Virus record (IMG/VR): IMGVR_UViG_3300021964_009390
Location: 1-64,000 of that record
DNA: 64,000 bases
Reading direction: 5' to 3' (one strand)
This document shows positions 25,954 through 59,781 of the stretch, piece after piece. The notes beneath the pieces were generated by a model that did no database searches, had not been told where the DNA came from, and saw only the letters and a list, made by a program, of their open reading frames with translations. The stretch's first letter is position 1. Every line of letters starts with the position of its first letter. A program made the position numbers and the translations under genes.

Positions 25954-26400
25954 ATGAACATAAAACATACACTATATCTTATCGGTACTCTAGTAGCAAC
26001 TCATACATATGGTAACACTTGCCCGTTGATGCAAGGAGACACCGTCGACCCGGACGAGACCAGTGTTGTCGCTGGACAGACAATAGAGTTTTGTTGCGGG
26101 AGTTGTGTGAAAGCGTTTGATAACAATGTAGCTTACTACATAAAAGCGATCCCATCATTAGGCGAGCTGTTCACTGACGAACAAAAAAAGCAACTCAAGG
26201 TGTGTTGTGTAAAATTGTTACCTCAACGTTTCTGCCCGGTGTACCCGGATCGGATCATCAACCCAAAAAGTCCAAGCGTAGAATACAAAGGTACTAAAAT
26301 ATATTTGTGGAGCAGCTCCGCGGTACGACGGTGGAATCGTGACCCGGATCGATATTACAAGCAAGCTGTAGAAGCCGGCGTGTTACCGGGATCCAAGTGA
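25954..26400 (+). CDS. Secreted YHS-like metal-binding protein
   Basis: Signal-peptide-like N-terminus, CPLM..VDP, IEFCCGSC, and a second repeat FCPVYP..VEYKG.KIY. Confidence 0.6.
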   Translation: MNIKHTLYLIGTLVATHTYGNTCPLMQGDTVDPDETSVVAGQTIEFCCGSCVKAFDNNVAYYIKAIPSLGELFTDEQKKQLKVCCVKLLPQRFCPVYPDRIINPKSPSVEYKGTKIYLWSSSAVRRWNRDPDRYYKQAVEAGVLPGSK

Positions 26401-26747
26401 TCACCCGGTTCACGTTGCTGGTGTTACTTCTCACTGGATGTAACCACAGTAACACGTTGTCCCCTGGAGACACCAATGTATACCGTACAGCTAGCTATGA
26501 TTCTGAAATACAAGCGTTGCTCAGAACAGACGCAGATAACAAACGCTGGTCCCGGACGTATTTACATGAAATAGACACAGCGGTGAGAAACGATGACCAT
26601 GACGCGATTAAATTCTACGTATCCGAATATGAAAAAATACCAATGGATATAGTACCTCATCATTTGAGACATGAACCAGGCTATGTACAACCGGTAACAC
26701 CATTAGAAAAATTCTTTAGAATCACCATATTTTTACCAGCTGAGTAA
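26397..26747 (+). CDS. Putative lipoprotein
   Basis: Lipobox LLTGC. Confidence 0.5.
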   Translation: MITRFTLLVLLLTGCNHSNTLSPGDTNVYRTASYDSEIQALLRTDADNKRWSRTYLHEIDTAVRNDDHDAIKFYVSEYEKIPMDIVPHHLRHEPGYVQPVTPLEKFFRITIFLPAE

Positions 26748-26896
26748 ACCTAAATAAGTATGTGGATCAGGAAGGGCAAGAGTCGATTGAGCAACTCAAA
26801 AATCAATTGGACAAGCAAAGACAAGAAATACAGTGGTTACAATCTGAGCTCATGAGATATAAAATGTTATTGGAGGGTAAAGATGTGATGATGAAC

Positions 26897-27067
26897 TCAC
26901 TTCCGACCACTAGACCTGATGCGTGACGGTTCAATTTGTATTTTGTTATCTACAATTTTAATTTTAAAACCTTCCGGACTGACATTTTTATAATATTGTA
27001 AATAATGCTTCAAACGATTGAATTTAGGCGCTTCATCACCCTCTACATATTGTCTAAACGATTTCAC
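26897..27067 (-). CDS. Small late protein with MKSFRQYVE N-terminus (GTG start)
   Basis: TAAATA lies 5 nt upstream of the GTG at 27067 on the minus strand. Confidence 0.6.
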   Translation of the reverse strand: MKSFRQYVEGDEAPKFNRLKHYLQYYKNVSPEGFKIKIVDNKIQIEPSRIRSSGRK

Positions 27068-27102
27068 ATGTATATTTATCGACCCAAACAATAAATACTA
27101 TA

Positions 27103-29456: not shown

Positions 29457-31646
29457 TTAATTTTGTTCTAACTTCTTAATATACACTCCCCATACACAAT
29501 TTTCCAGGAGAGCTTCTCCTGCCCATTCCACGTCCTTTAAATTTAAAATATTTTCGAACCCAGACTCATGCCACTGCCACCGTCCGGAACCATAAATTCT
29601 ATCGTATGCCTCTTGGTTTCTAGCAAAATCATGCAACATCAATACATCCCCTTCTTCAGCTATAGGTGAGTAAGTCCCGAACTCTGCGTTTTTTGAATTA
29701 CCGTCTACGAGCCAGCAAGTTTTTTTATCTTGAGCTAGCTTCCGCAAATGCTCTATTGTCTTGGTATTAAAACAATCAAGAGGTTTAAATTTTATATTAT
29801 TAAATGTATCAAACATCTTTTGAGAGTGCCTGGGGAATGGGTCAATCGTATGTATCGGAGTTTGAGGACAAATAGTTGCCAAAAAGGCAGTCAGGCCCCC
29901 CTCCCCTGTACCTAGTTCAATAATTAAATCAAACTTGTTACGAGAAAAGTAATCATGGAAGGCGTGGTACGCTCCTGGATGTTGTTGTGATCGTAAACCT
30001 TTTAGGGAATCGCTCCACCCTCCTTCAAAACAAGGTCCGTTATATTCAGATTTGGATGTACGTAATAGTATGTCAAGCTCATCCGTACCAAGGTAAGTAT
30101 CTATTAGTCGTTGAAGTAAAAAGTCTTCCGGCATGATACCTTTTTGATGATGCCGGATTTGAGACGAATGTAGAGTTACTACAACTGTATCTTCGAGTAC
30201 AATATCGTCTAGCGGGATCGTTGCTGATTTGTATATGTCACTAAACGAGCCATGCCGGCTTTGCGCAAACTGAAGAGAGATTACATTCTCATCAATATAT
30301 TTTACTAAATTTCTATAACCGAGCTCTTTAATACCATATTTTGTAGGAGTGTTTAACAAATCTCCCCAGCCGATATGCAAGGACATAACAGCATTTACAG
30401 ATTCCATTACCTTTTTGAACACTTGAGACCTAGGCCTACATGCCATCGCGCAGATGTTAACGCTACCACACCCCGCATTTTCGAGAGGTTGAACCTGATC
30501 ATGTGTCCATGTATGGCTCATAATAGACTCGTACAGGTCTCCTACAACAAACATATCAGCGTCTAACCACATACCCCCATTCTCGTACAAGACCCTTTGC
30601 CGAGCGTAATCTGATTTAAATTCAACACATAGTGAGTCATATTCTTCTGGTATATCGTCAAACGTTGATTTTAACTTTTCAGTGTTCCACACTTCGAAGA
30701 CGCAATTAGAATTCTTTTCCATAGACTGTAAACATTTTTCAATGAAATACGGTTTTTCTCCCTCCCAAAATGTGAATAGTTTCCTTTCTTCGAAGAATCG
30801 CCAATCGTAACTGTCTAGTCTGTCAATAAGTGCGGTTCTTTCTTCTTCTGTGAATTCTTGATCAAACCTTTTCAAATGCAAATTCTCCATGATGAAATCA
30901 AAATACGTAGCCCCTGGATACAAAGGCCGGCCTGAGCCAGTATCGTTATTTTGAGTAGTGATTCCCTCAGATGTACATTGCAAATGGACATACGAAGGTT
31001 TACCTCTGTTAGGGTCTCCCCAATAATATACAAAACTATGGTCACCCATACCAACTGCTGGGTCTATACAGAGCATTTCAAATTTGGATGTCCATTGAGG
31101 ATGAGGGTGTTGCTTTTCCGCTTGCATGTTACCGAATCCATAATGGTCTAAAACGGATTTTTTGACTACAATACAACCTTCACAGTAATTGCGTATTGCG
31201 TTAATTTTAGGATACATCTCCAAATTGCTGTCTATTTGAAGCTGTTCTGTTGGCTTACAACCAAGATGTGTACCTTTATTCAACCACTTGACGGCATTGG
31301 ACAAATGCCACGGTAGGTAAATATCATCATCATCCCATATAGCGACGTATTCCGAATGCTGACCACCAAAACTGTCCACGTATGTAAGAGCCTTGTTATA
31401 TACATCCGAGATCGACTCAAACTCACCGGCGTTTATTAGACGTATGTTGTGTTGCTGTTTTAAAAATTCAGACAACTTTATTTCTACTCGGTGATTGTTA
31501 AAAATAATCAGCTCTTTATTAGGATAATCCTGTAACATAAAATACGATATAGCTGAACGTAATAACTCATATCGCCCCTTCGTCGCGCAAAGGCATGTCA
31601 CTTTAGGTACACCGTAAATGTATTCTGGTTCCGGCTTAACTTCCAT
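29457..31646 (-). CDS. Three-domain fusion: GT2 glycosyltransferase + GT32/capsular DxD glycosyltransferase + class I SAM methyltransferase
   Basis: N-terminus CATKGR...IWDDDDIYLP; middle FKSDYARQRVLYENGGMWLDAD; C-terminus IIELGTGEGG...LVDG...LMLHD. Confidence 0.8.
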   Translation of the reverse strand: MEVKPEPEYIYGVPKVTCLCATKGRYELLRSAISYFMLQDYPNKELIIFNNHRVEIKLSEFLKQQHNIRLINAGEFESISDVYNKALTYVDSFGGQHSEYVAIWDDDDIYLPWHLSNAVKWLNKGTHLGCKPTEQLQIDSNLEMYPKINAIRNYCEGCIVVKKSVLDHYGFGNMQAEKQHPHPQWTSKFEMLCIDPAVGMGDHSFVYYWGDPNRGKPSYVHLQCTSEGITTQNNDTGSGRPLYPGATYFDFIMENLHLKRFDQEFTEEERTALIDRLDSYDWRFFEERKLFTFWEGEKPYFIEKCLQSMEKNSNCVFEVWNTEKLKSTFDDIPEEYDSLCVEFKSDYARQRVLYENGGMWLDADMFVVGDLYESIMSHTWTHDQVQPLENAGCGSVNICAMACRPRSQVFKKVMESVNAVMSLHIGWGDLLNTPTKYGIKELGYRNLVKYIDENVISLQFAQSRHGSFSDIYKSATIPLDDIVLEDTVVVTLHSSQIRHHQKGIMPEDFLLQRLIDTYLGTDELDILLRTSKSEYNGPCFEGGWSDSLKGLRSQQHPGAYHAFHDYFSRNKFDLIIELGTGEGGLTAFLATICPQTPIHTIDPFPRHSQKMFDTFNNIKFKPLDCFNTKTIEHLRKLAQDKKTCWLVDGNSKNAEFGTYSPIAEEGDVLMLHDFARNQEAYDRIYGSGRWQWHESGFENILNLKDVEWAGEALLENCVWGVYIKKLEQN

Positions 31647-32276: not shown

Positions 32277-32660
32277 GGGCCTGTAAAGGATTCGACGTTC
32301 ATTGACAGTTAACAACCGCAAGTGAGAGAGATGCCTGGCTCTCTAAAAAGGCATACCCGCATACTTGGCGATATTCAAGATGCTAAGCGTGGTGTTCAAG
32401 AGGTCCTTCACGGGATCTTCTCCGAGCAGCCCGCTCTCTTGGCAGCTTAAGCTGTCACGTGTCACCCCGGATGCTCGATAAGGGAGTGATGCGTCAACAT
32501 CGAGCAAGCACCAGATATGTTGTCTGTTGATGACTGGTGTTGAAACTCAAATCGAAACAGGATAGGAGGTCTGCAGCCGAGAACAGTAGACTAAACTTGT
32601 GAACGAGGTGTTAACCAGAGATGTTAACGGACGCCGGTTCGACTCCGGCCAGGTCCACCA
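32277..32660 (+). ncRNA. ssrA: tmRNA (transfer-messenger RNA), 384 nt
   Basis: 5' GGGCCTG pairs with 3' CAGGTCC-ACCA, including the G3:U alanine determinant. Also GGATTCGAC, the T-arm GCCGG-TTCGACT-CCGGC, pseudoknot 1 (GAGAGAG/CTCTCT with ATGCCT/AGGCAT), and a tag ORF ending ALLAA-TAA. Confidence 0.95.
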
Positions 32661-33691: not shown

Positions 33692-34483
33692 ATGTTCTAT
33701 TGCTTTGACGATTTAAATATAATTGTACATACACCACCAAAAAATGCGTGTACCACTGTAAAAGAATACATGTGGAACCAGCTACGCGTAAAGCATCCTG
33801 ACTTACCAAATCATCACCCACATGCGCGATCCATGGTGGAATACATGATAAGTGAACGTGCATGGGTTAGAGAGAAGGATATACCTGCTAGAATAAATGA
33901 TCGAGGGTATAAATTATATACAATATACAGAGACCCATACACCAGATTTTATAGCGCTTTACATCAAAAATTTATCGCTCATCACCCAGCTGGTAACAAA
34001 AATTTACTCCATCCGGAAACCCCTAGTCAAAAAAGAGGAGGGGAGTTTTACAACTGGTTTAAAAGTATACACGGGCAAGATATATCTAAGATAACAAATA
34101 AACAATTGATAGACTACCATTGTGGAACATATACTAGCATAGTAGACCCACATTTTACACCAATATTTAATAATGATATATACAATAACATAATCGATTA
34201 CAAAAACATTATTATATTAAATATTGATTCAAATTTAAATAAAAATTTGGATGAAATTTTTAAAGAGCGTACCACTACCTTTAAATTAAAAAGACATAAC
34301 ACAAGTACTTACAACACAAAATACCTGGCAGATTTCAATGAAAAAACATTTTTAGAAAACTGTATCGATGATAATAGATGTATAAACAAAAGCGAGTATT
34401 ACAAGAGCTCGGTACGTGAATCGTTCAAAATTGATTTTGATATGTACAACAAATTAGATAAGTTATCTATATATAGTACCTAA
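33692..34483 (+). CDS. Sulfotransferase family 2 protein
   Basis: 5'-PSB-like PKNACTTVK and 3'-PB-like RDPYTRFYSA. Confidence 0.75.
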   Translation: MFYCFDDLNIIVHTPPKNACTTVKEYMWNQLRVKHPDLPNHHPHARSMVEYMISERAWVREKDIPARINDRGYKLYTIYRDPYTRFYSALHQKFIAHHPAGNKNLLHPETPSQKRGGEFYNWFKSIHGQDISKITNKQLIDYHCGTYTSIVDPHFTPIFNNDIYNNIIDYKNIIILNIDSNLNKNLDEIFKERTTTFKLKRHNTSTYNTKYLADFNEKTFLENCIDDNRCINKSEYYKSSVRESFKIDFDMYNKLDKLSIYST

Positions 34484-35173
34484 TTTTTTTTGTTGCTTAG
34501 ACCAGTGTGTACCACCTCTTGTTATTGGGTATATCTTTATATATTTAATAATATCTTCTCTACATACTAGATTGATACTATGGTCTACTTTTAACTTGTC
34601 GATGTAAAATAGAAGGTTTTGTTTCCAATCAGTATCACTAGGGTAACCAATCAGTGAGGAGATATAATGCTGAATTACACCAGGCCCTGTACAGCTCCAA
34701 ACATTATTATGTTTTCTCTTTTCAATATTAACACATACATTACGCCATATTGTGGAGATATGTATATTTCTAGGTGTGGATATCAAAGGACTATTAGAAA
34801 TTCGAAACTTTCCCCGGGCATTAATTTTACAAACCAGTGTAATGTCGTACTCCGGAGCGATAAACAACTGTTTAATTTTTTTAAGATTACTGTGTATAAT
34901 TCGATGACTAGTATCCCAATAACTGCCCCCGTCAACCAAACATCTGACTATCCTAAACATATCCGACCGGGCGGCCGGTAATGTATCATGGAAATTTTCA
35001 AAATATTCACAAACTTCCGGAGACATGTTGTCACGTATGTATTCACTAGCAGTGTCTCTGTTATACAAAACATAGCTTTCACTCGAAACAATATTTTCCA
35101 TTGACTTAATATTAGGAGTTAGCCGTGGGTCTATATTAATTGTGTCCCAGTATTGAAATAATGTTTTTATCAT
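34463..35173 (-). CDS. GT32/OCH1-like DxD glycosyltransferase
   Basis: LFQYWD, AARSDMFR...GGSYWD, TGPG. Confidence 0.75.
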   Translation of the reverse strand: MIKTLFQYWDTINIDPRLTPNIKSMENIVSSESYVLYNRDTASEYIRDNMSPEVCEYFENFHDTLPAARSDMFRIVRCLVDGGSYWDTSHRIIHSNLKKIKQLFIAPEYDITLVCKINARGKFRISNSPLISTPRNIHISTIWRNVCVNIEKRKHNNVWSCTGPGVIQHYISSLIGYPSDTDWKQNLLFYIDKLKVDHSINLVCREDIIKYIKIYPITRGGTHWSKQQKKLGTIYR

Positions 35174-35190
35174 ATAAGTATATATAACTT

Positions 35191-35961
35191 ATGGGAAAAT
35201 TACAACATGTATATGTAGCTACTGTATGTACCGGTAACCGATTAGAAGAGTTTAAATTGTTAAAACGGACATTAGAAAGATATCATCGTTGTACATGGTA
35301 TGTGACATGTGACACGTATAGTCACACGACCATCAAACAATATCATAATGTAGTTGCATTAGAGAAGCAGTTACAACCCGCTAGAAACACTGGAGAAAGC
35401 TTTCAAAACTTCACCGCGGTAGTTGAGAACAAGATGGAGAGCATGATACATGGTATAAACCAGCATGGTTGGTGCCTATTCTTGGATACCGATTTGATAT
35501 TTTTAAATAAACTAGACGGTGAGTTTACATCTTATATTAATAATGACACAAAACGGTTATTTGTAACTGATCACTATTCTTTAACACCACGAAAATACGG
35601 TAGATTCAACGCCGGAATGATCGCGATGAAAGATGTAGATACCGCTCGTCGATGGTCGCAATTGACATATGAGCTGTCATGCCCAGTAGGTCTAGAACAA
35701 AAACCAATTGAAAGTCTAGTACGTGAGAATAAACCCAACACCATTATCGCTGGTCCGCAATATAATTACGGGTGGTGGAGAGATAGGAACATAGATAATG
35801 CGCATAATGTTGTAGGAGGTCAATTCTGTATTAATAATAAACCGGTGGTAAACTTACATGTACATACAGATAAACTGTTGCAAAGAGCCCGGGAGTCTAG
35901 ATGGCTCGCTAAAATAAAAACCGACGTAAAAGAGTGTTCAAATTATCAAAATATATTATAA
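35191..35961 (+). CDS. GT-A fold nucleotide-sugar transferase
   Basis: LFLDTDLIF, FNAGMI, EQK..E, YNYGWW. Confidence 0.65.
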   Translation: MGKLQHVYVATVCTGNRLEEFKLLKRTLERYHRCTWYVTCDTYSHTTIKQYHNVVALEKQLQPARNTGESFQNFTAVVENKMESMIHGINQHGWCLFLDTDLIFLNKLDGEFTSYINNDTKRLFVTDHYSLTPRKYGRFNAGMIAMKDVDTARRWSQLTYELSCPVGLEQKPIESLVRENKPNTIIAGPQYNYGWWRDRNIDNAHNVVGGQFCINNKPVVNLHVHTDKLLQRARESRWLAKIKTDVKECSNYQNIL

Positions 35962-46947: not shown

Positions 46948-46948
46948 T

Positions 46949-47619: not shown

Positions 47620-48243
47620 ATGAAAAATTATAAATATACAAAACAATGGTTCACATCTAAAGATTTAGAGCAGTTTTTAAAAATCGACCGGGAGAAAGAA
47701 TTGCATATTCTTGAAATTGGCTCATTTGAAGGTGAAAGTACAGTCTGGTTTCTTAACAATGTACTCCAACATTCAAAATCTACTATCACATGTATAGACC
47801 CGTGGGACAGTTATTCGCAGAATAGCAAAAGCTTTCAAAGTTACTCCAACCCAGAAAATGAATGGCATAATAGTGATAAGTATGACACATTCAAGCATAA
47901 TATAAAAGAGTCTGGGGTTGAAGAAAAGGTTTTAGTTAAAAGAGGATTATCTCATGAAATTTTACCGGAATTGCTTGTTGAGAACAACCAATATGACATC
48001 GTCTTTATAGATGGTAACCATGTAGCCCCATATGTACTAACAGACGCCATGTTTAGCTGGTACATGCTAAAAGATCGTGGGATAATGATATTTGATGATT
48101 ACTTGTGGAGACCTCAGCTTAATAAAGTCTTGACACCAAAACTGGCTGTAGATTCGTTTATAACCAACTTTCAAGATTATTGTGAGGTAATTTACGATGG
48201 CTACCGCAAGGCCATTAAAAAGGTAATGAGTGACAATGAATAA
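47620..48243 (+). CDS. Class I SAM methyltransferase (Methyltransf_24-like)
   Basis: LEIGSFEGEST, YDIVFIDGNH, IMIFDDYLW. Confidence 0.9.
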   Translation: MKNYKYTKQWFTSKDLEQFLKIDREKELHILEIGSFEGESTVWFLNNVLQHSKSTITCIDPWDSYSQNSKSFQSYSNPENEWHNSDKYDTFKHNIKESGVEEKVLVKRGLSHEILPELLVENNQYDIVFIDGNHVAPYVLTDAMFSWYMLKDRGIMIFDDYLWRPQLNKVLTPKLAVDSFITNFQDYCEVIYDGYRKAIKKVMSDNE

Positions 48244-49003: not shown

Positions 49004-51052
49004 ATGAAAATAATACACCATGTCACTATGTGGGCCATGTCAGTAGGTACAGTTACCGGTGGAGAGTTGTGGTTCAACAACGGAAAAATGCTAGAAGGAG
49101 AAATACTAGAAGCGAACAACACTCACGTACTGTTCGCGCGCGCGTCCGATCTACAACAATTCAGATTCAGCAAAGAGCTACTGACACTAGACAGTCAAAA
49201 ATTAATAGAGCTATATTATAACACAAACAGATATGGTGAAATTCCACAGGTCAAAACACCGTTAGACGATCGAACATTACAAATCTACACCAATCGTATA
49301 GATCAATTGATCGAGAACCGTTTGAGAGGCCTGAAAAAGAGACCCACTGCAAAAGCTGATGATAATACATGGGTGAGAAGGGTGTATTTGACCACGATTG
49401 GTCGTATACCCAATAGACAAGAGGTCGCGGAGTATCTGAACGATAGAGACTCTCAAAAGAGGGACAAACTGATACAGAAGCTGCTGTCTGGTCCCGGTCA
49501 TGTGACACATCAATTGAACTGGCTGAGCGATTTGTTACGAGTCAAAGATCGTCTGGACGGAGTCAACATAAACGTAGGTGGTGTATACAGGGAATGGCTC
49601 CGACAGCAATTGCAAAACAATGTACCGTGGGACCAGTTTGTGAGAAGTTTGTTGGATAGTGAGGGTGATTTATTCGGTAACAATCCGGCCGCCGGTTATT
49701 ATCTACGAGACAGAGGCATGCAACAAGACAACATAGCGCACACTGTACAAATATTTTTAGGTACACGTCTCGAATGCGCCATGTGTCACAACCACCCGTT
49801 CGACAGATGGACACAAAAAGAGTTTTACGAGATGACCGCATTCACTAGCGGTGTTGGGGGAGTGACTAGAAGCGCTAGGAGGCAACCGTTGAGAGATTTG
49901 AATAGAATGATAAGCAGAGATGGTACACCCCTTGCAGGTAAGTTACAAAATTGGAGAAACGTAGTGAGAGATTCTATACAGTTTGGTGTAGACACAAACG
50001 GTACTGGTAAAATAAAATTGACAGATGAGTTTATGGAAAATGATGCCAAGCCAGGCGACACACTACATGCTAAAGCCATGTTCACACCACATACCTACAT
50101 AGACCCTGAGGATAAAAACCCTAGAAGTCTCACCATACTGGCAAAATGGTTGACTGATCGGAACAACCCGCGGTTCACCACCGTGATAGCCAATAGATTG
50201 TGGAAGAACGTATTTGGTGTAGGTGTAATAGAACCAGTCGACAATTTTATGGATAGCACCATCCCGGAAAACACAGACCTCATGTGGTTTATTGAAAGAA
50301 TATTAGTTAGTGTCAATTATGACATGAGAGAATTCCAACGAGTGTTGTTGAATACCAAGCTGTTCTCTAGAGAGAGCAAACCGACTGATTACGAGAGTCT
50401 GGAAACTTATGATTTTTCTGGACCAGTGTTACGTCGAATGACCGGTGAGCAACTATGGGATTCATTGGTCACTCTAGTATACAACAACATAGACACGAGT
50501 GACAGAGTGTACATACAAAATCAGTCTGCTGTGTATGTGAACATATACAACAAGTACAAGGATTGGAACGGTACAGCCATATATCAAGACCTGGTTCGGA
50601 TAGCTCAAGCCAACCCAGATCAGAGACGGTTGGAAGATTCATTCAAACAAGAGTCTAGCGACGTGAAACCGATACCAGACAGAGGTCTGATTCGAAGCAG
50701 CTATTTGTCGTATCCAGCACCAGGGGGTCACTTGATAAGGCAGTTTGGTGGTAGTGATAAATTGGCAATTGAGAACAGCAACAGTGAACCAAACACAACA
50801 CAAGTGTTAAACTTGTTGAACGGATTTGTAGAGAAAAATATATTGAACAACAAAAAGGCGGATTTTATCAAAAGCATGCAAGCTGAGAAAAACTCGGTCA
50901 AGCAAATTGAAGATGTGTACATGTCTGTGTTGGCACGTAAACCAACCAGTCAAGAGTTACGTGAGCTGAAAGATATACTAAAAGAAGAGAATGGATACAA
51001 ACACGTCGCATGGATATTGCTCAACACCCACGAGTTTATGTTTATACAGTAA
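49004..51052 (+). CDS. DUF1549/DUF1553 (PSD1/PSD2) protein with N-terminal signal and SHD1-like domain
   Basis: ADD.TWVRRVYL..IGRIP, FLGTRLECAMCHNHPFDRWTQKEFY, NPRFTTVIANRLW, RRMTGEQLWDS, QVL.LLN, W.LLNT.EF.F. Confidence 0.9.
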   Translation: MKIIHHVTMWAMSVGTVTGGELWFNNGKMLEGEILEANNTHVLFARASDLQQFRFSKELLTLDSQKLIELYYNTNRYGEIPQVKTPLDDRTLQIYTNRIDQLIENRLRGLKKRPTAKADDNTWVRRVYLTTIGRIPNRQEVAEYLNDRDSQKRDKLIQKLLSGPGHVTHQLNWLSDLLRVKDRLDGVNINVGGVYREWLRQQLQNNVPWDQFVRSLLDSEGDLFGNNPAAGYYLRDRGMQQDNIAHTVQIFLGTRLECAMCHNHPFDRWTQKEFYEMTAFTSGVGGVTRSARRQPLRDLNRMISRDGTPLAGKLQNWRNVVRDSIQFGVDTNGTGKIKLTDEFMENDAKPGDTLHAKAMFTPHTYIDPEDKNPRSLTILAKWLTDRNNPRFTTVIANRLWKNVFGVGVIEPVDNFMDSTIPENTDLMWFIERILVSVNYDMREFQRVLLNTKLFSRESKPTDYESLETYDFSGPVLRRMTGEQLWDSLVTLVYNNIDTSDRVYIQNQSAVYVNIYNKYKDWNGTAIYQDLVRIAQANPDQRRLEDSFKQESSDVKPIPDRGLIRSSYLSYPAPGGHLIRQFGGSDKLAIENSNSEPNTTQVLNLLNGFVEKNILNNKKADFIKSMQAEKNSVKQIEDVYMSVLARKPTSQELRELKDILKEENGYKHVAWILLNTHEFMFIQ

Positions 51053-51071
51053 ATTGAATCAAATTAGTACC

Positions 51072-51497
51072 ATGAAAAAACACGACAGTATAGATGCATC
51101 AATATTAAAAACATTACCTAACCCAACCACTGGTGCATATGAAATTAAAATAAAAATCCCAGAATTTACATTTTTAGGGGTCAAAGAACAACCGGATTTC
51201 GCAGATACATACCTGAGTTTTTACCCTAAAGACAAAATAATTGAGTTGAAAAGCCTTAAACAATATGTGTACCAATTGAGAGATATTGTTGTTTCATACG
51301 AGAGGTTGATTAATGTATTTTACGATCACGTAATGGGTGTTTATCAGCCTGAGAGACTTAGGGTTGTAATGGTGTTTAACCCGCGTGGTGGTATAACATC
51401 GAAATTGACTATAGATTCTGATTGGTCAGTCAGAGGCGGTGAAGAAAAATTTAAAGACTGGACTAACAAAAACGAACAGTGGAACATAACACTATAA
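51072..51497 (+). CDS. QueF type I-fold protein lacking the catalytic Cys
   Basis: LPNP..YEI.I..PEFTFLGVKEQPDFA..ELKSLK.Y....SYE..RGGI. The canonical CP..G.PDF is replaced. Confidence 0.75.
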   Translation: MKKHDSIDASILKTLPNPTTGAYEIKIKIPEFTFLGVKEQPDFADTYLSFYPKDKIIELKSLKQYVYQLRDIVVSYERLINVFYDHVMGVYQPERLRVVMVFNPRGGITSKLTIDSDWSVRGGEEKFKDWTNKNEQWNITL

Positions 51498-51505
51498 TAG
51501 TGTAA

Positions 51506-51907
51506 ATGGATAAAGATCTCCCGGATAATGTAGCGCCGAACCCACACTCACTACCATATGCGAGTAATATAGGTGCACCAGTAATTAAACCGGACCATAG
51601 TATCACTGGATGGAAGCATGGAGCAGTACACTCAGCTAACAAACACTACCAGGACCGGTTTGATGAATTGAAAAAACAATTCGAACAGCTAGCAGAAGAT
51701 TTTAAATGGAACGATATAATGTTCAACGCCGATTTTCGCTTGAAGCCAGTTATAGGTAACACATATTATTTGTACAAGAGACCCAGTCAGAACAAACACT
51801 ACATATCGTTGTTCGCCCCGCAGGAACGTGTTGGAGGATATGACAACTATGTAGGCGCTTTCCGCTTAAACTATGACAACAGGTGGGAAAAAATTACAAA
51901 TGATTAG
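51506..51907 (+). CDS. DUF2452-like protein
   Basis: LPYASNIGAP.I, F...PVIG.TYYLY.R, G.FRLN.D..W. Confidence 0.65.
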   Translation: MDKDLPDNVAPNPHSLPYASNIGAPVIKPDHSITGWKHGAVHSANKHYQDRFDELKKQFEQLAEDFKWNDIMFNADFRLKPVIGNTYYLYKRPSQNKHYISLFAPQERVGGYDNYVGAFRLNYDNRWEKITND

Positions 51908-52874
51908 CTAGCAATCTACGTGCTTGTTTCTCTTCATGCTCAATCATAAGATTGATCGCGTAGTCTTTTTGTTTGAGTTCGATGTCCCAGTCAATATGCA
52001 TGTTCTCTGTATAGAAACTCTCGTGTTTGTGTCGCCACAACGCTGGTGAATCAATAGCAAAATCTGTATGGGCTCGTGGGTTACCATTGGCACCACCCTC
52101 ACTGTAATGAAACAATGGATTCACATCATGAGCTTTCCATGTACTAGCACACACTCGGAACGCCTCTTTAGCGCCCCACGTACCTGGGTTACATGCATGA
52201 TGCAAGTTGTCAAATGTGATGGGTATACCAGTCTCTAGATGGATCAGCTCGAACAACATGTCGGGTGTCCATAGACCTTTGTCTTCGTTCTCTAGCACTA
52301 GCCGAGATTTGACTCGATCCGGAAGCTTGTGGTAGTTAGTTATGAATTCAGCAGCTATAGTTTCTGCATCACCGGTACTGCGACTCATGTGTATATTCAA
52401 GGGATACCAGTAAGATCTACTGTGTTCACCTGCCATACGATCCAGCAGCCATGCATGATGGTCCAACTCATTTATGGTGCGTCTCACAACTTCTGGATTG
52501 GCGCTACACAACACATTGAAATGATCCGGATGAAAACTGACACGAAAATCTTTGGGAGACTGTCTGGTCACAAAATGTTGTATCTCTGCAAACTTGTCGT
52601 CAATCAACGTGGCGTTAGGTAGGTCTCGTAAACCAACGTTGGCTTTGTCAAGATTGAACAACGGAAACAGCGTGCTACTGATTCGATAACCCCAGCCGTT
52701 ACTGAGCGCGAACCGCATGGTTTCGAGAGTGGTTGTGAGATTCTCTAGTGCACGTTCTCCTAGGATCTCTAGAGCATCCACACGTTCATGTTTCTCGAAC
52801 TGAGTGAATCTGAACGCGCGATGGTTAAATCCTTGTTTTTTTAACGCTAAACTAATGCAACATAGGTTATACAT
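51894..52874 (-). CDS. uvsE: UV damage endonuclease
   Basis: YRISS.LFP, RVSFHPDHFNVL.S, LNIH, RLVLENED, TFDNLHH, HYSE. Confidence 0.9.
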   Translation of the reverse strand: MYNLCCISLALKKQGFNHRAFRFTQFEKHERVDALEILGERALENLTTTLETMRFALSNGWGYRISSTLFPLFNLDKANVGLRDLPNATLIDDKFAEIQHFVTRQSPKDFRVSFHPDHFNVLCSANPEVVRRTINELDHHAWLLDRMAGEHSRSYWYPLNIHMSRSTGDAETIAAEFITNYHKLPDRVKSRLVLENEDKGLWTPDMLFELIHLETGIPITFDNLHHACNPGTWGAKEAFRVCASTWKAHDVNPLFHYSEGGANGNPRAHTDFAIDSPALWRHKHESFYTENMHIDWDIELKQKDYAINLMIEHEEKQARRLLANHL

Positions 52875-52887
52875 AATAAATAAGTAT

Positions 52888-53418
52888 ATGAGCATAAACC
52901 AAGACACGCAACTAATATGGGAGAATTACAACTATTCATTCGACAAAGATTCCATGATAAATCACGCGGTAAAAATGCACCAGAAACATGGTGCTGGGAT
53001 TGACGAGATAAAAGAAACATTGATGGCTGCGGCGATGTCCGGTGGTCCGGAACAAGCACATCATGTGGCGCAGTATTTAAAAAGTGATGAATTCACTAAC
53101 GAACTTAAAAATCGTTTACAGTCTCTAGATGATGAGATGATGCACGAGGAGCTTGACCGAGGAGACGAAGCTGGTGATTATACTGCGTTTTTGAAGGAGA
53201 TGGCACGAGAGCTGGTGAGAAACGACATGCCGGAGGAGGAAGCAATGGAAATTGTGTTGAGTCATCCATTTGAAGAAACATACGGTGAATATTTGAGAGT
53301 CAGAGGAGCAGCCGGTGTATACACAGCCGCTCAAAAGCACAAAGAACTAGCGGAAAAGTCCGGATATTACCATGAGGTTGACATGAACATGTTACAAAAT
53401 TGGAAGTATGTTAGCTAG
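52888..53418 (+). CDS. Putative virion protein (DTQLIWENY N-terminus)
   Basis: Late motif 5 nt upstream. Confidence 0.6.
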   Translation: MSINQDTQLIWENYNYSFDKDSMINHAVKMHQKHGAGIDEIKETLMAAAMSGGPEQAHHVAQYLKSDEFTNELKNRLQSLDDEMMHEELDRGDEAGDYTAFLKEMARELVRNDMPEEEAMEIVLSHPFEETYGEYLRVRGAAGVYTAAQKHKELAEKSGYYHEVDMNMLQNWKYVS

Positions 53419-54383
53419 TCTATATAATATTTAATTGTACTTTCTAACAGCTCATCAAAATTAGCGCTTGAAGACCAACCAAGTTCAGTCTTCAATTTGT
53501 TACAATCAACCGCGTACCGGTAGTCATGCCCCTTACGATCCGTTACAAATGTAATTTGCTGTTTATATGACATACCATCTTGTTTAGGTCTCAATCTATC
53601 TAGCAACCCACATATTTTGCTCACAAGGTCAATGTTACTCATCTCATGATCACCTCCAATATTATATGTTTCCCCGGTCAAACCTTTACGAAAGACCAGC
53701 TCGATGGCTCGGCAATGGTCTAATACATACAACCAGTCTCGTATGTTTTTACCGTCACCATACACTGGTATATTCCCACCTGTTAACGCGGTTTTCACCA
53801 CTGTAGGTATCAATTTTTCTACATGTTGATGGGGTCCAAAATTGTTACTACAACTGGTGATGACTGTGTCAATTCCATATGTACGTTGATAACTACGCAC
53901 CATCAAACCACCACTCGCTTTGCTGGCGCTGTAAGGGCTGTTAGGCGCAACTGGTGTATCCTCTGTGAACATACCTGTGTCACCTAAAGTACCATATACT
54001 TCATCGGTACTTACATAGTGAAACCTACCGGTACAATATTTCCGGAATGCTTCTAGTAACACTCCTGTACCATTCACATTTGTGGTGACAAATTGCAAAG
54101 GGTCTTCGATAGAGTTATCCACGTGACTCTCAGCCGCTAGATGTATGATAGAATCTATACCGTACTGTTGGATGGTGTATTCAACTTGCTGAGCATTGCA
54201 TATGTCACCTTTGACAAATGTGTATCTACCATTCAATTTGACTGAATCTAAATTGCTCAAGTCTCCTGCGTATGTCAGCTTGTCATAATTAACAAACCAC
54301 ATGTCATTACTATTGTTGATCAAATGCAATATCAAATTACTACCAATAAAACCGCACCCTCCAGTGATTAAAACATGTTTCAT
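53415..54383 (-). CDS. rmlB: dTDP-glucose 4,6-dehydratase
   Basis: ITGGCGFIGSN, DKLTYAG, HLAAESHVD, VSTDEVYG, YSASKAS, YGDG.NIRDWLYV, DRKGHD.RY. Confidence 0.95.
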   Translation of the reverse strand: MKHVLITGGCGFIGSNLILHLINNSNDMWFVNYDKLTYAGDLSNLDSVKLNGRYTFVKGDICNAQQVEYTIQQYGIDSIIHLAAESHVDNSIEDPLQFVTTNVNGTGVLLEAFRKYCTGRFHYVSTDEVYGTLGDTGMFTEDTPVAPNSPYSASKASGGLMVRSYQRTYGIDTVITSCSNNFGPHQHVEKLIPTVVKTALTGGNIPVYGDGKNIRDWLYVLDHCRAIELVFRKGLTGETYNIGGDHEMSNIDLVSKICGLLDRLRPKQDGMSYKQQITFVTDRKGHDYRYAVDCNKLKTELGWSSSANFDELLESTIKYYID

Positions 54384-54396
54384 AATAAATATATGT

Positions 54397-54918
54397 ATGT
54401 TAGAACGATTCGATAATCTATATGAAAAGCACCTTCCGGAGGAAAAAAAGAAAGGTTTAGACGGCAAAGCATGTTGGAAAGGATATCGACAACAGGGCAC
54501 CAAAAAGAAGGGTAACAAAACTGTCGACAACTGCGTGAAGGTCGGTGAGGGTTTATGGGCCAATATAAACAAGAAAAATAAGTCCGGTCGTAAATCAGCC
54601 AGCAAAGGAAGCAAAGCCTACAAAGCCGCTGTCAAAGCCGGAGACAAGCTAGAAGCCACCAAGGAAAGTATTGCTGCTGAGAAAAATGCACAATGCACTG
54701 GACCTACTAAAAAAGCCAGTAGCACCAGCAAAGGTAAAAAATGGATGAAATGTGTGAAAAGTGACAGCGGTGGTTACAAACGTATACACTGGGGTCAAAA
54801 AGGAGTCAAAGTGAGCGGCAAAGCAAACACCAAAAGACGTAAAAGCTTCAGAGCTCGTCACAAATGTAGCACGGCCAAAAGCAACACACCACGCGGACAA
54901 GCATGCAAGGACTGGTAG
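54397..54918 (+). CDS. Basic modular putative virion protein
   Basis: CWKGY..GTKKKG..VDNCV and GLWANIN modules; Lys-rich. Confidence 0.65.
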   Translation: MLERFDNLYEKHLPEEKKKGLDGKACWKGYRQQGTKKKGNKTVDNCVKVGEGLWANINKKNKSGRKSASKGSKAYKAAVKAGDKLEATKESIAAEKNAQCTGPTKKASSTSKGKKWMKCVKSDSGGYKRIHWGQKGVKVSGKANTKRRKSFRARHKCSTAKSNTPRGQACKDW

Positions 54919-55538
54919 TAACAGACGCTAGATTGCATGAGCAACCTCATTGCGAAAAAGCAGTAGCCGACTACACACCCACATTGCAAGATGTGGCCAT
55001 ATTCGATCAGAACGGATATGACATGTGCCCGGTGGAGCTGGAATATGCAAAAGCGAACGGTTTCATACACAGCAATCATCGTGTGAGTCACATAGCGTTA
55101 AGACAGGAGTGGATGACACATGAACCGGTCACAATAGGAGCACACTTCAATCATTGCAATCTATTCGAGCGCAAAGGGTACACAGGAGAAGCTAGACAAC
55201 AGCTGCACACATGGAGCAAACACAACGCGCTTGTGTGGAAGATAATAAAAATTCGTCCAAAATGGGGATTAGACTTCAGTGTAGATTATGCAGACAACGA
55301 TGGTAATGTGTTCGAGGTGTTACACTGGGAATGGGACAGCTTCGACTACAACGAAGTGAGACAGAAGCGAGACAAATACGAACCTTTCTTGTTAAGTACA
55401 GACTGGGATGACGCGGCTAAACAATTGTTGAAACGTAAAGACGAATGGCATTCATTAGATTTCTTTGCACAAAGTGACTGGAAGTGTAAATACTTTGGAA
55501 TAGAACCAGAACAATTTAAAATGGTATTATGGCAATAG
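54903..55538 (+). CDS. Conserved phage hypothetical protein
   Basis: FDQNGYD, FERKGY and PKWGLDFSVDY recognised as T4-like accessory motifs. Confidence 0.6.
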   Translation: MQGLVVTDARLHEQPHCEKAVADYTPTLQDVAIFDQNGYDMCPVELEYAKANGFIHSNHRVSHIALRQEWMTHEPVTIGAHFNHCNLFERKGYTGEARQQLHTWSKHNALVWKIIKIRPKWGLDFSVDYADNDGNVFEVLHWEWDSFDYNEVRQKRDKYEPFLLSTDWDDAAKQLLKRKDEWHSLDFFAQSDWKCKYFGIEPEQFKMVLWQ

Positions 55539-55948
55539 AACAAGAACATCAAGACGAATCAATACGCCCATGGGGTCATTACGAGATCCTGTTGGATGAA
55601 GAGTATTGCAAAGTGAAACGTATATATGTGAAGCCCGGTCAACGTCTGAGTTATCAGTATCATCACAAGAGGCAGGAAGCATGGACCGTGGTGAGCGGAG
55701 TCGCTAGAATCACCTTGAACGGTAACACAAGCGATTATGAACCAGGTCAAACTGTGTTGATACCACTAGGTGCTAAACATCGCATGGCCAACCCAGCAGA
55801 AGATCAGGACATGATACTGATCGAGGTGCAAACGGGTACATATTTTGGTGAGGATGACATAGTGAGAGTAGAAGATGACTACGATCGTCCGAAGAAACAT
55901 GTCAATGTGTGGAAACCTAAATGGGAATGGACAGATGAGGACCTTTAA
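55529..55948 (+). CDS. Mannose-6-phosphate isomerase type II-like cupin
   Basis: RPWGHY, VKRIYVKPGQRLSYQYHHKRQEAW, IEVQTG.YFGEDDIVR. Confidence 0.88.
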   Translation: MAIEQEHQDESIRPWGHYEILLDEEYCKVKRIYVKPGQRLSYQYHHKRQEAWTVVSGVARITLNGNTSDYEPGQTVLIPLGAKHRMANPAEDQDMILIEVQTGTYFGEDDIVRVEDDYDRPKKHVNVWKPKWEWTDEDL

Positions 55949-56381
55949 AAAATTTCATGAAAACCGAGAGGGTTGCCCAAAAGCAACACAGGACCTAGAA
56001 CTGAACACCAAGAACAGGAACGCCACAAGAGAAAACCACATGTACGGTCCGTTGAACCCGGCCATGCCCAGCAAAGATTACTGGCAAAAGATCGCTGACA
56101 AATGGGGCTCTAGTGTGGAAGAGGCCATGAACAGTCGATGTGCCAATTGTGTAGCGTTTGACAAATCCCCTCGTATGAAAGATTGCTTACCGATGTCTGA
56201 CGAGAAGATGCATTGGTCATATCACGACATGCCGGGGTTCGATCAAGACCCAGAGTTTGGCTATTGCTGGATGCATCACTTCAAATGTTTCAACGGCCGG
56301 ACTTGTGACACCTGGGCCACCGGCGGGCCTATAACAGATGATGAAACATCTAAAAAGTGGCAAGAAAAAAACCAGTCATGA
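55935..56381 (+). CDS. Putative virion protein (MRTFKKFHE N-terminus), Cys-rich
   Basis: CPKATQD, YGPLNP, CANCVAFD. Confidence 0.6.
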   Translation: MRTFKKFHENREGCPKATQDLELNTKNRNATRENHMYGPLNPAMPSKDYWQKIADKWGSSVEEAMNSRCANCVAFDKSPRMKDCLPMSDEKMHWSYHDMPGFDQDPEFGYCWMHHFKCFNGRTCDTWATGGPITDDETSKKWQEKNQS

Positions 56382-57604
56382 AAACGTTCAAACAATTTTT
56401 TTACGAAAACAGAGAGTATCAAGTAGATGACTTTCAGCAAGAAGAATATCTAGAGTATCAGAGCGAGTTTGTATATGATTATGAAGCCATGATGGGCTTA
56501 CCACATGATAAACTAGCCAGTATCATAACCAAAGCCGGTAACAAACGTTTCTCTGCAACCATTGATGGTGTGGATCCATCTGTTGATGGTACTGAGCATT
56601 ATTATGTCGTTACTGATCGTGACGTGTTGAAAAATATAGCGTCATTGATTGCTAGTACAGGTGAGCCACATCATGAGGAATTCGCCATGGGTGTTGGTAC
56701 TGGTGATAGTTTTGAATTCATGGTACGTTTACCCAAATCCGGTTTCACCGGTGAAGAGATTGGTGACATGCAAGTGTTTCTTGTAACACCAGGAGGTTCT
56801 GATCAGCTACATGCACTACTATCTCAAGTGAGAGAAGGTTTATGGACCAACATCAACGCCAAGAAAAAACGCGGAGGCAAGAGTGCCAAGAAAGGCAGCA
56901 AAGCTTACAAAGCAGCCAAGAAAGCTGGTGACAAGCTAGAAGCCACAAAAGAAAGTGTATGGAAACCGGGAGATTTAGGTGTTCAGAATTGGGGTGAGTA
57001 TGAAGCAGGTGGTCGGCATGCTGAACTAGGAGCCATCGAACCTCATATGGAGAAAATCCCAGGTCCGGATCGTGTGGTAGCGCACATGAACGGATTGCAG
57101 AATGAATACATGAGAGTGTTAAAAACCCGGAAATCCAACCCAGATGTGAAGGACAACTACAAGTATGTCCGCAACAATATAGATCAAGCCATACAGATGA
57201 TGAATCAGACGACAGGTGGAGAAACCGAATCAAGAAGAAGCATCATACAAGACATCCACATTGCAGGATTTGCAGCACGTAGATACATACGAGCAATTGA
57301 ATCAGGTGAAACTAATCAAGCTTATTACAAGAGATTGTTGAATCATCTGCGTGACGCGGCTGATGCCATGGAGGGATTGATCGAACAAGAGGTTGAAGGA
57401 GAACTTGGTGGATGGAATGTCAATGAAAATTTCAAGGACGGCAAGAAAAAAGGCAAGAGCCGTCCGGGTCGAGTCAAAAGAGCCGGGGCCAGTTGCAACG
57501 GCAGCGTCACAAGTTTACGTAAAAAGGCCAAAGCCGGTGGTGAGAAGGGCAAGATGTACCACTGGTGCGCCAACATGAAGAGTGGGAGGAAGAAGAAAAA
57601 ATAA
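56378..57604 (+). CDS. Modular putative virion polyprotein (MKTFKQFFYE N-terminus)
   Basis: Acidic domains alternate with basic modules EGLWTNIN... and ENFKDGKKKG... Confidence 0.65.
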   Translation: MKTFKQFFYENREYQVDDFQQEEYLEYQSEFVYDYEAMMGLPHDKLASIITKAGNKRFSATIDGVDPSVDGTEHYYVVTDRDVLKNIASLIASTGEPHHEEFAMGVGTGDSFEFMVRLPKSGFTGEEIGDMQVFLVTPGGSDQLHALLSQVREGLWTNINAKKKRGGKSAKKGSKAYKAAKKAGDKLEATKESVWKPGDLGVQNWGEYEAGGRHAELGAIEPHMEKIPGPDRVVAHMNGLQNEYMRVLKTRKSNPDVKDNYKYVRNNIDQAIQMMNQTTGGETESRRSIIQDIHIAGFAARRYIRAIESGETNQAYYKRLLNHLRDAADAMEGLIEQEVEGELGGWNVNENFKDGKKKGKSRPGRVKRAGASCNGSVTSLRKKAKAGGEKGKMYHWCANMKSGRKKKK

Positions 57605-57667
57605 TGATTAGACCAAGTTTAATTAATACTATAAATAGTATGGAAAAAAATTGCAATATCACTTGAA

Positions 57668-58390
57668 ATGAGATCAAAAAAACATATTTTAGTTTTAGGT
57701 GACTCACATGCAAATAAGTTTTTTAGCTCTACCAAACTAGCAACCGGGGCCCAGAAACAACCGGATAGAATAATAAACGCTTTACAACCTGACTTTAGAT
57801 TCGATACCGTGGTCTGCCCGGGCGCGACTGCTCAGGGTGCAGTAAATCCTACATCCAAAACAAAAGCACTTGAAACATTTAAAAAGAAATTGAGTAAAAT
57901 AAATCCAGACGATTATGATTACATTGCAATTATGTTGGGTGAAGTAGATTGTGGTTTCGTAATTTGGTATCGTGCGGAAAAATACTCGATATCGGTTGAG
58001 GAACAATTGAATTTGTCGGTAAACAATCTGTTTGAATTTATTCGGAATGAAGTGCTTTTAAAGTTTAAACCAAAACAAGTTATCGTTATGGGAAGTGTTT
58101 TGCCTACCATAAAAGACGATCAAGATTGGGGTGAAGTTTGTCATCTTAGAAGTTCCGTAAAAGCAACTCAACTCGAAAGAACAAATTTGACACTAAGATA
58201 CAATTGTATATTGAAAGAAGAGTCGTGTAAACTAGGTTATAATTATATTGATATTACAGATGAGACAATCGATAAACATACAGGTTTAATTGGTGACAAA
58301 TACATAAATAGTAACGAATTTGACCACCACCTGCCTTTCAAAAAAACATGGAAGTTTTTTTATACCAAATTAATTAAATTAACAAAATGA
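57668..58390 (+). CDS. SGNH/GDSL-like hydrolase or acyltransferase
   Basis: LVLGDSH, G.TAQG, GEVDC, DHH. Confidence 0.65.
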   Translation: MRSKKHILVLGDSHANKFFSSTKLATGAQKQPDRIINALQPDFRFDTVVCPGATAQGAVNPTSKTKALETFKKKLSKINPDDYDYIAIMLGEVDCGFVIWYRAEKYSISVEEQLNLSVNNLFEFIRNEVLLKFKPKQVIVMGSVLPTIKDDQDWGEVCHLRSSVKATQLERTNLTLRYNCILKEESCKLGYNYIDITDETIDKHTGLIGDKYINSNEFDHHLPFKKTWKFFYTKLIKLTK

Positions 58391-58496
58391 AAACATTTAA
58401 ACAATATTAGATATGAAATACAAATTTACAAAAAATTGGTTCGATGACTCAGCAATAAAAAAAATAACATATAAGTTGCGGATTAGTCAAAATACC

Positions 58497-58504
58497 TATA
58501 AATA
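58497..58504 (+). promoter_or_regulatory. Canonical T4-type late promoter TATAAATA upstream of DUF1501
   Basis: Exact match, 8 nt before the ATG. Confidence 0.6.
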
Positions 58505-58512
58505 TATAGTAT

Positions 58513-59781
58513 ATGAATGATTTAAGCCGCCGCGAATTTGTAAGTACAGTTGCCAAAAGCTGTTTAGGAGTGAGCGCCATACTGAGCGCTCAAGATTTAT
58601 TAGCAATCAAACCCACCGGGCAGATACCAACCGCTCGGAATGTTATATTTTTATACATGGCAGGAGGCATGACTCACATCGACACGTTCGACCCAAAACC
58701 GGAGAACAGTGACGTGATGGGTGAAACAACTGCCATTGACACTACAGCGGACGGGGTACAGATAGGCAACTGGTTACCCAACACCGCCAAACAGATGCAC
58801 AACGCAAGTTTGATACGTACATTGTCGTCCAATCAAGGTGCACATGCACAAGCCAACTATTTGTTACACACCAGCTACCAACGCCGCGGCACGATCGTGC
58901 ATCCAACCATGGGTGCATGGGTGAGCAAACAGACACCCAAACTGAATCGATCGTTACCATCTAACGTGAGAATCAACGGAGGTAGCGACATATTAGGTTC
59001 CGGTTATTTGGAGAAAAAACACGGACCGTTACCATTGGGTAACCCCAACGCAGGTATACAAAATGTGTCACAGGCCAAGTATCTGGACGAGACCATGTAC
59101 AACAAACGGATGGACATATCCAGCAAATTCAACAAAAATTTCTTAGACATGTTCCCACAAAAGCAAGTACGTGCATACACTGATTTATATGATGATGCCA
59201 TCCGGTTGATGAAAAGCACAGATCTTGAAGCGTTCGATCTGACAAAAGAAGACCAAGCCACTCGAGACATGTACGGTACCAACAGTTTTGGTCAGGGCTG
59301 CCTATTAGCTAGACGGTTGGTTGAGACTGGTGTACGTTATGTCGAGGTGCAGCTAGGTGGTTGGGACATGCACAACGATGTGTTTGGTAACATGGAGACA
59401 CGAGGTGCTACATTGGACAATGGATTGGCTTCGTTGTTACAAGATTTGAACCGTCGTGGTCTGTTGAGCTCCACACTAGTTGTTGTGGCGAGTGAATTTG
59501 GTCGTACACCAGAGGTCAAAGCAGGCCGCGTGGGACGTGACCATCACCCATCTGCATTCAGCGCCATGTTGGCCGGAGGAGGAGTCAAAGGAGGTTACGT
59601 ACATGGCAAGAGCGACAAGCGTGGTCACTATGTAGAAGAGAAAGGTGTGAAAATGGAAGATCTGAACGCCACGATTGCTTACATGATGGGAATGGACATC
59701 ACTGAAACAATCTATTCTCCAAGTGGCAGACCATTTAAAATTGCTAATGCGGGTGAGGTTGTAACTGACATTTTAGCATAA
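58513..59781 (+). CDS. DUF1501 protein with twin-arginine (Tat) signal
   Basis: LSRREFV, VIFLYMAGGMTHIDTFDPKP, FGQGCLLARRLVETGV..VEV..GGWD.H, SEFGRTP, GRDHHP, GGGVKGG..G.SD. Confidence 0.93.
   Translation: MNDLSRREFVSTVAKSCLGVSAILSAQDLLAIKPTGQIPTARNVIFLYMAGGMTHIDTFDPKPENSDVMGETTAIDTTADGVQIGNWLPNTAKQMHNASLIRTLSSNQGAHAQANYLLHTSYQRRGTIVHPTMGAWVSKQTPKLNRSLPSNVRINGGSDILGSGYLEKKHGPLPLGNPNAGIQNVSQAKYLDETMYNKRMDISSKFNKNFLDMFPQKQVRAYTDLYDDAIRLMKSTDLEAFDLTKEDQATRDMYGTNSFGQGCLLARRLVETGVRYVEVQLGGWDMHNDVFGNMETRGATLDNGLASLLQDLNRRGLLSSTLVVVASEFGRTPEVKAGRVGRDHHPSAFSAMLAGGGVKGGYVHGKSDKRGHYVEEKGVKMEDLNATIAYMMGMDITETIYSPSGRPFKIANAGEVVTDILA

Follow-up and report, generated by a model that had tools for sequence, protein, structure and literature searches.

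Auxiliary genes of a complete T4-like jumbo phage from estuarine water point to a probable host among marine Opitutae

The stretch of DNA analyzed here (the window) comprises bases 1 to 64,000 of a single 222,461-bp record of the IMG/VR virus database (IMGVR_UViG_3300021964_009390), which is a complete, uncultured T4-like jumbo phage from estuarine/marine water. The window encodes, among others, a DUF1549/DUF1553 protein, a DUF1501 protein, the UV-damage endonuclease UvdE, and a short DegT-like protein. Comparison of these genes with bacterial genomes indicated that the host is most likely a marine member of the Opitutae (Verrucomicrobiota) related to the metagenome-assembled genome (MAG) SP85, since for at least three unlinked phage loci (the DUF operon, UvdE, and the DegT-like gene) the closest cellular relatives, or the only ones, were located in this MAG; the assignment is not directly proven. 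The original prediction, made from the sequence of the window, had placed the host among bacteria of the Planctomycetota-Verrucomicrobiota-Chlamydiota (PVC) group. This placement was supported and could be narrowed to Verrucomicrobiota and, within them, to the class Opitutae, but on partly different grounds: the DUF genes amount to one line of evidence, an SHD1-like domain was not supported, the markers singled out for host assignment were silent, and it is UvdE and the DegT-like protein that carry the convergence. A consistent affiliation of host-derived genes with another phylum had been named as the result that would speak against a PVC host, and no testable host-like gene clearly pointed elsewhere.

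The record corresponds to scaffold Ga0222719_10000014 of the Joint Genome Institute (JGI) metagenome 3300021964, one of eight from San Francisco Bay pelagic water (PMC10720571). The genome has a guanine-plus-cytosine (GC) content of 39%, was rated 100% complete by CheckV, and at more than 200 kb falls within the jumbo phage class. Near-identical DNA was also present in estuary and marine sequencing runs, with 24 rows from 13 studies holding at least part of the window, in line with the aquatic habitat that had been predicted. The contig was recognized as a T4-like phage by its T4-type head module (Table 1). Outside the window, it encodes a gp43 DNA polymerase and gp46 (phrog_262, 2e-196, and phrog_77, 2.5e-91), plus a ribonucleotide reductase. 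More than 600 IMG/VR contigs encoded relatives of the major capsid protein (the best 80 at 64 to 88% identity), and the best match in a cultured phage was only 33% identical, which places the phage in a large group of uncultured T4-like phages. It has gp23, gp21, gp43, and gp46 in common with T4-like cyanomyoviruses (Synechococcus phages S-SCSM1 and RB11-B and Prochlorococcus phage P-TIM68), which likewise are aquatic and have large myovirus-type genomes with host-derived auxiliary genes; however, their DNA polymerases and major capsid proteins are only 31 to 34% identical to those of the phage described here.

Judged from sequence comparison, UvdE is the strongest single host marker. Its presence had been predicted (as UvsE), and Pfam identified it well above the cut-off. 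When window positions 44 to 64 kb were compared by blastn with 151 genomes of the order to which SP85 belongs, SP85 alone gave strong matches at the nucleotide level apart from those to the DUF genes, namely, to UvdE (68% over 817 nucleotides) and to the DegT-like gene (66% over ∼540 nucleotides). At the protein level, the UvdE proteins of the phage and SP85 were 65% identical. When 1.84 billion cluster representatives were searched exhaustively and without a profile, one cluster was returned at 65% identity (460 bits), the representative of which shares 76% identity with the SP85 protein, while all other full-length representatives reached at most 45% (best, 231 bits). The SP85 protein (MBG28918.1, annotated "Opitutae bacterium") is encoded on a 177,498-bp bacterial contig. 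For the DegT-like protein, which is rare among bacteria, SP85 provided the only match among the 151 sampled Verrucomicrobiota genomes; there, the gene adjoins genes for WbqC, TauD, and a GT2 glycosyltransferase.

The matching SP85 contigs (177, 27, and 28 kb) look bacterial, as judged from their sizes, a GC content of 46 to 55% in the stretches read, and neighboring genes of bacterial type (sulfatase, AlgH, PSCyt1, and cysteine desulfurase-type aminotransferase). The transferred genes of the phage have a GC content of 43 to 47%, compared to the phage mean of 39%, with the exception of the DegT-like gene (38%). Blastn of other phage segments against SP85 yielded only generic matches to ClpC, tRNA, and ribonucleotide reductase genes.

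The third line of evidence comes from the two DUF genes. Both had been predicted in the window, and Pfam confirmed DUF1501 over its full profile length and located the DUF1549 and DUF1553 domains in one protein. An SHD1-like domain that had been proposed for the latter was not detected (no match to PF03983 at E ≤ 1 in residues 1 to 100 or at E ≤ 0.001 over the whole protein); even so, the N-terminal module of this protein is conserved in its homologue from SP85, which is 39% identical overall. A genome-wide scan returned 267 DUF1501 relatives, of which the best 80, almost all from Verrucomicrobiota, were used for the analysis of gene neighborhoods. Within these 80, SP85 was the top match (58% identity), the remaining bacteria reached at most 52%, and a DUF1549/1553 gene was located just upstream of DUF1501 at 77 loci. 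SP85 was also the best match of the phage DUF1549/1553 protein, and among the top matches its alignment extended furthest into the N-terminal module. In addition, 19 viral contigs in IMG/VR encoded DUF1501 proteins with 66 to 74% identity, all of them together with a DUF1549/1553 protein (54 to 60%).

In most of these 19 viral loci, the coordinates place the two genes side by side, and in one phage, G008, they are separated by 16 nucleotides. The pair described here resembles its counterparts in Verrucomicrobiota and Planctomycetota in domain order, twin-arginine translocation (Tat) signal, CxxCHxH motif, and conserved metal-site residues. Adjacency is common to the bacteria and the 19 phage contigs, whereas the present copy is phage encoded and split by 7,460 bp. 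In the DUF1501 tree, the 20 phage copies were monophyletic, with a Shimodaira-Hasegawa-like approximate likelihood ratio test (SH-aLRT) support of 100, and formed the sister group of an SP85 paralogue (SH-aLRT, 99). Taken by itself, this sequence-based tree does not fix the phylum of the host. DUF1501 and DUF1549/1553 are one co-transferred operon that was acquired once, and they were therefore counted as a single line of evidence rather than two.

Two further features agreed with this assignment, the small exported YHS-like protein more weakly and the tRNA-Thr at the phylum level only. The former had been described as a secreted double-YHS-like protein, a label that appears reasonable given its leader, its two modules, the precomputed PF04945 (YHS) annotation of its homologues, and its look-alike clusters in the Atlas. 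In Pfam (YHS/TRASH, PF04945 and PF24273), it matched TRASH below the threshold (E = 9e-4; 19.7 bits with a cut-off of 27). The Atlas clusters consist of YHS/TRASH proteins and are most common in Verrucomicrobiota (score, 0.94), followed by Planctomycetota. Its best match in 302 PVC genomes was found in SP85 (42%), next to a gene for a PSCyt1 cytochrome c, and matches in the 151 Planctomycetota genomes did not exceed 35%. At least 8 of the 151 Verrucomicrobiota genomes contained tRNAs with 90 to 93% identity to the phage tRNA-Thr, for which no Planctomycetota match was obtained at E ≤ 1e-20. The tRNA-Met was discarded as a host marker, being 93 to 94% identical in Verrucomicrobiota and Planctomycetota alike and hence nondiscriminating.

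The 19 contigs carrying the DUF pair are unrelated to the phage described here. The only such genome read whole, G008 (IMGVR_UViG_3300017763_000002; marine, 204,906 bp, CheckV completeness of 100%), has just 16 of 257 proteins in common with it and represents an unrecognized lineage. G008-type phages resemble the present phage in having the DUF pair, a Clp ATPase, and a ribonucleotide reductase, and G008 itself also in its tmRNA (transfer-messenger RNA) and tRNA-Thr(TGT); in contrast, they lack gp23, possess a different terminase (phrog_2 in G008), and encode very large open reading frames (ORFs), which in G008 extend to 5,895, 3,418, and 2,343 amino acids. Among ten large ORFs of G008 compared with PHROGs, only a terminase, a tail fiber protein, and a glycosyltransferase were matched. 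Conversely, DUF1501 was absent from five T4-like contigs with 65 to 69% capsid identity to the phage, one of them a complete genome of 229,717 bp. The occurrence of the pair in an unrelated lineage and its absence from T4-like relatives indicated that it moves between unrelated phages, with shared hosts as the simplest implication. UvdE, on the other hand, was only 27 to 31% identical to that of the other lineage, compared to 65% for SP85, and thus was not acquired from those phages. No DUF1501 gene was present in 50,697 GenBank phage records, from which DUF1549/1553 was likewise absent, and no description of DUF1501 or DUF1549/1553 as phage genes was found in the literature; together with its occurrence in the unrelated 205-kb lineage, the pair looks like an as yet undescribed phage auxiliary module.

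ClpC, PrkA, and tmRNA, whose taxonomy had been put forward as a check on a PVC host, showed no PVC signal and were rejected as host markers, being uninformative in either direction. The relatives of ClpC in its phage clade were 51 to 78% identical, whereas identity did not exceed 47% in bacteria from many phyla and was 44 to 45% in PVC genomes; contigs L098 and L242 of this clade keep the gene order of the phage. PrkA had metagenomic relatives with 72 to 90% identity, located on many contigs of up to 290 kb and embedded in the phage gene order in every contig examined, while bacterial proteins reached at most 56% (named matches were from Kofleriaceae and Planctomycetota, the latter at 55 to 56%). 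In a blastn comparison with the 151 Verrucomicrobiota genomes, the tmRNA matched by its universal 3′ end only (32 nucleotides); its pairwise identity to three Verrucomicrobiota tmRNAs was 42 to 51%, and its tag peptide was unlike Verrucomicrobiota tags.

Several peculiarities of these genes were noted besides. The double-AAA ClpC-type ATPase directly adjoins gp23 and lacks the UVR motif, unlike most of the bacterial ClpC matches listed. The PrkA-YeaH-SpoVR trio is complete in the phage, missing from the syntenic 209-kb relative L098 and present in L237 and L242; for PrkA or SpoVR in phages, nothing relevant was found in the literature. The tmRNA tag is unusually long (27 residues, ending in ALLAA). 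The tag of G008 resembles those of Puniceicoccaceae as well as those of cyanobacteria, so that no claim is drawn from it. One MAG titled "Crocinitomicaceae" (Bacteroidota; L060/G006) fell into the same GTDB phylum sample as SP85, and its DUF1501 protein nested with Rubritalea copies. Its title is probably wrong, and it was dropped as a Bacteroidota comparator.

A number of points weigh against a host related to SP85. The assignment is based on homology, without a direct link such as a clustered regularly interspaced short palindromic repeat (CRISPR) spacer, Hi-C contact, or isolate. As a by-product of blastn of phage positions 4 to 118 kb and 170 to 190 kb, no short perfect spacer-like match was seen in SP85, although no CRISPR array was searched for. 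SP85 itself is a MAG, and the GC content of the phage (39%) is below that of the SP85 stretches (46 to 55%). ClpC, PrkA, and tmRNA are without PVC affinity, and the tRNA and DegT comparisons covered PVC genomes only. The approximately unbiased (AU) test did not reject a grouping of the phage DUF1501 clade with Planctomycetota (P = 0.45), and the DUF pair could have come from G008-type phages instead of the host. Finally, closer homologues of the YHS-like protein (50 to 74%) are metagenomic, and the two examined were located on phage-like contigs.

Alternatively, the phage might infect a bacterium outside the PVC group, for example, a member of the Bacteroidota or Proteobacteria, and have received its PVC-type genes second-hand through other phages or free DNA, in which case these genes would reveal little about its present host. 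This would fit the scattered distribution of the DUF pair (common to an unrelated lineage and missing from the five T4-like contigs), the lack of a PVC signal in ClpC, PrkA, and tmRNA as the older cellular-type genes, and a low GC content unlike that of SP85, and it gains some room from the fact that the genome comparators were all PVC bacteria. We nevertheless consider it unlikely, since UvdE is far closer to SP85 than to the other phage lineage and three unlinked loci point to one and the same MAG. Moreover, exchange between phages usually needs a common host, and a protein exported via Tat as the partner of a PVC-typical system would presumably be of little use in a cell in which this system is missing.

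A host among the Planctomycetota is quite improbable. Although the AU test left open a grouping of the phage DUF1501 clade with six Planctomycetota rows, and a Phycisphaeraceae copy with 50% identity is located near this clade, SP85 provided the best match for DUF1501, DUF1549/1553, UvdE, the DegT-like protein, and the YHS-like protein. Planctomycetota likewise rank second among the Atlas look-alikes of the YHS-like protein and are among the nearest named bacterial matches of PrkA; in their 151 genomes, however, the YHS-like matches stayed at or below 35%, and the tRNA-Thr remained without a match at the threshold given above. It is very improbable that the matching SP85 contigs represent viral DNA, either misbinned or integrated, and that the supposedly bacterial relatives are in fact phage genes. 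Such an artifact would be in keeping with the origin of SP85 as a metagenome bin, with the shortness of two of the contigs (27 to 28 kb), and with the DegT-like gene being otherwise seen in phages only, but UvdE and the YHS-like gene are located 41 kb apart on the 177-kb contig in stretches of 54% and 46% GC, this contig also has the sulfatase, AlgH, and PSCyt1 genes and a tRNA-like match, the SP85 DUF pair is followed by genes for a PSCyt1-leucine-rich repeat protein and the cysteine desulfurase-type aminotransferase (55% GC), and no phage structural gene was matched at the SP85 loci.

The host-like proteins of the phage allow some predictions on their function. DUF1501 contains a twin-arginine signal (SRREF at residues 5 to 9), and residues R6, R7, D57, T58, D285, H287, and H344 are invariant. 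No solved structure was matched by sequence. An AlphaFold2 model with a predicted local distance difference test (pLDDT) score of 83 retrieved sulfatases and LtaS in Foldseek (E = 5e-9; probability, 1.0; template modeling score, ∼0.44) and also resembled phosphonate monoester hydrolase, with ∼11% sequence identity among the structural matches; according to this model, the fold is that of the alkaline phosphatase/sulfatase superfamily. DUF1501 is thus predicted to be a metal-dependent enzyme of this superfamily with a probable Thr nucleophile, which during infection would be exported via the Tat system of the host. The DUF1549/1553 protein contains a CxxCHxH motif (residues 258 to 264) that is retained by every one of the 19 viral copies and by 72 of the 74 from bacteria. 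This CxxCH-bearing protein and the YHS-like protein would be exported via Sec.

The DUF1549/1553 homologue of SP85 (L010:515-2938) was found to harbor an internal insert of ∼130 amino acids with two TRASH/YHS-like modules, which resemble the free YHS-like protein of the phage. The phage version of DUF1549/1553 lacks this insert, and the YHS-like protein is encoded separately. This hint of a domain fusion suggests that YHS-like proteins work with the DUF1549/1553 family. Because of these internal modules, and because the free YHS-like gene of SP85 adjoins a PSCyt1 cytochrome gene, the YHS-like protein may act together with DUF1549/1553 in the periplasm of the infected cell. Together, the three exported phage proteins would add to a periplasmic system for which PVC bacteria have many gene copies, and UvdE, by nicking DNA damaged by UV light, would allow replication to continue in light-exposed water. 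It is possible, albeit rather doubtful, that the pair and the free YHS/TRASH protein constitute a self-contained periplasmic module that is kept and exchanged by unrelated phages of marine Verrucomicrobiota since it limits the success of infection. If so, the trimmed phage versions would represent the smallest functional unit of a protein system that ranks among the largest uncharacterized ones of PVC bacteria and would offer both a tractable way into the function of this system and a metagenome marker for PVC phages.

Table 1. Features of the 64,000-bp window considered in this study
Feature	Position	Strand	Evidence or remarks
T4-type head module: gp21 prohead protease, gp22-like scaffold, gp23 major capsid protein	2317..5706	+	Pfam Peptidase_S77 2e-31, T4_CASP 1.5e-6, Gp23 5e-88
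ClpC-type ATPase without UVR motif	5766..8228	-	Pfam; tested as host marker
PrkA, YeaH (DUF444), SpoVR trio	14893..19690 (PrkA 14893-16959)	+	Tested as host marker
Small exported protein, 148 amino acids, with one TRASH-like and one YHS-like Cys-Pro module	25954..26400	+	Hydrophobic N-terminus, two Cys-Pro modules
tmRNA	32277..32660	+	Rfam, 90 bits; tested as host marker
Short DegT-like protein, 217 amino acids	46949..47602	+	69% amino acid identity over full length to a 215-amino-acid SP85 protein
DUF1549/DUF1553 protein (PSCyt2 PF07583/PSD1 PF07587), one protein of 682 amino acids	49004..51052	+	Pfam E 1.4e-41 (143 bits) and E 7.6e-30 (104 bits)
Insert between DUF1549/1553 and DUF1501	51053..58512	.	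7,460 bp; QueF-like, DUF2452, UvdE, GDP-mannose dehydratase, cupin, and further genes without assignment (Pfam)
UvdE UV-damage endonuclease	51894..52907	-	Pfam PF03851 E 3.3e-39, 135 bits (cut-off 24)
DUF1501 protein	58513..59781	+	Pfam PF07394 E 1.6e-115, 386.8 bits (cut-off 27), 390/390 profile positions

Apart from these features, the window is rich in genes for glycan synthesis (positions 19687 to 22548, 29457 to 31646, 34463 to 48934, 53415 to 55948, and 61079 to 63945). They encode NeuB and a cytidylyltransferase, glycosyltransferases of the GT2, GT25, GT47-like, GT10 (fucosyltransferase), and GT1 types, and three sulfotransferases, as well as WbqC, PIG-L, an ATP-grasp enzyme, an N-formyltransferase, a methyltransferase, a GDP-mannose dehydratase, and a cupin of the mannose-6-phosphate isomerase type; the ORF at 29457 to 31646 is a glycosyltransferase. 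This set would suit the synthesis or modification of a sulfated, fucose- or sialic acid-like surface glycan. Two regions (10597 to 12535 and 50991 to 51497) contain a QueF with two domains, another QueF-like gene, and, according to the JGI annotation, an N-terminal domain similar to dGTP diphosphohydrolase, which hint at 7-deazaguanine modification of DNA. An HNH endonuclease gene (8268 to 9008, minus strand) between ClpC and the next conserved gene is missing at the equivalent position of L098 and therefore is probably a mobile insertion. Positions 43408 to 44879 encode a lysine decarboxylase-like protein of the LOG family together with an inorganic pyrophosphatase, the latter being 56 to 57% identical to copies that three G008-type contigs carry next to their DUF pair.

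In the sea, Opitutae play an important part in breaking down sulfated polysaccharides from algae (PMC8857213). P8625, a marine phage presented in its report as the first lytic one to infect Verrucomicrobia (subdivision 4), was the only cultured Verrucomicrobiota phage that we found in the literature, in which we came across no description of a large one and nothing relevant on T4-like phages of Verrucomicrobia. By its description, P8625 resembles the phage analyzed here in being marine and in having the same broad host group as predicted for the latter, whereas its reported capsid of ∼47 nm and tail of ∼75 nm suggest a much smaller phage (PMC4642752). The present phage is T4-like and carries host-derived auxiliary genes from families not previously reported in phages. 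Its complete 222-kb genome, for which the host assignment can be defended, adds a large virus to the marine Opitutae system. The conservation of the DUF pair in two unrelated phage lineages suggests that it represents a new auxiliary module and may serve as a practical marker for phages infecting PVC bacteria.

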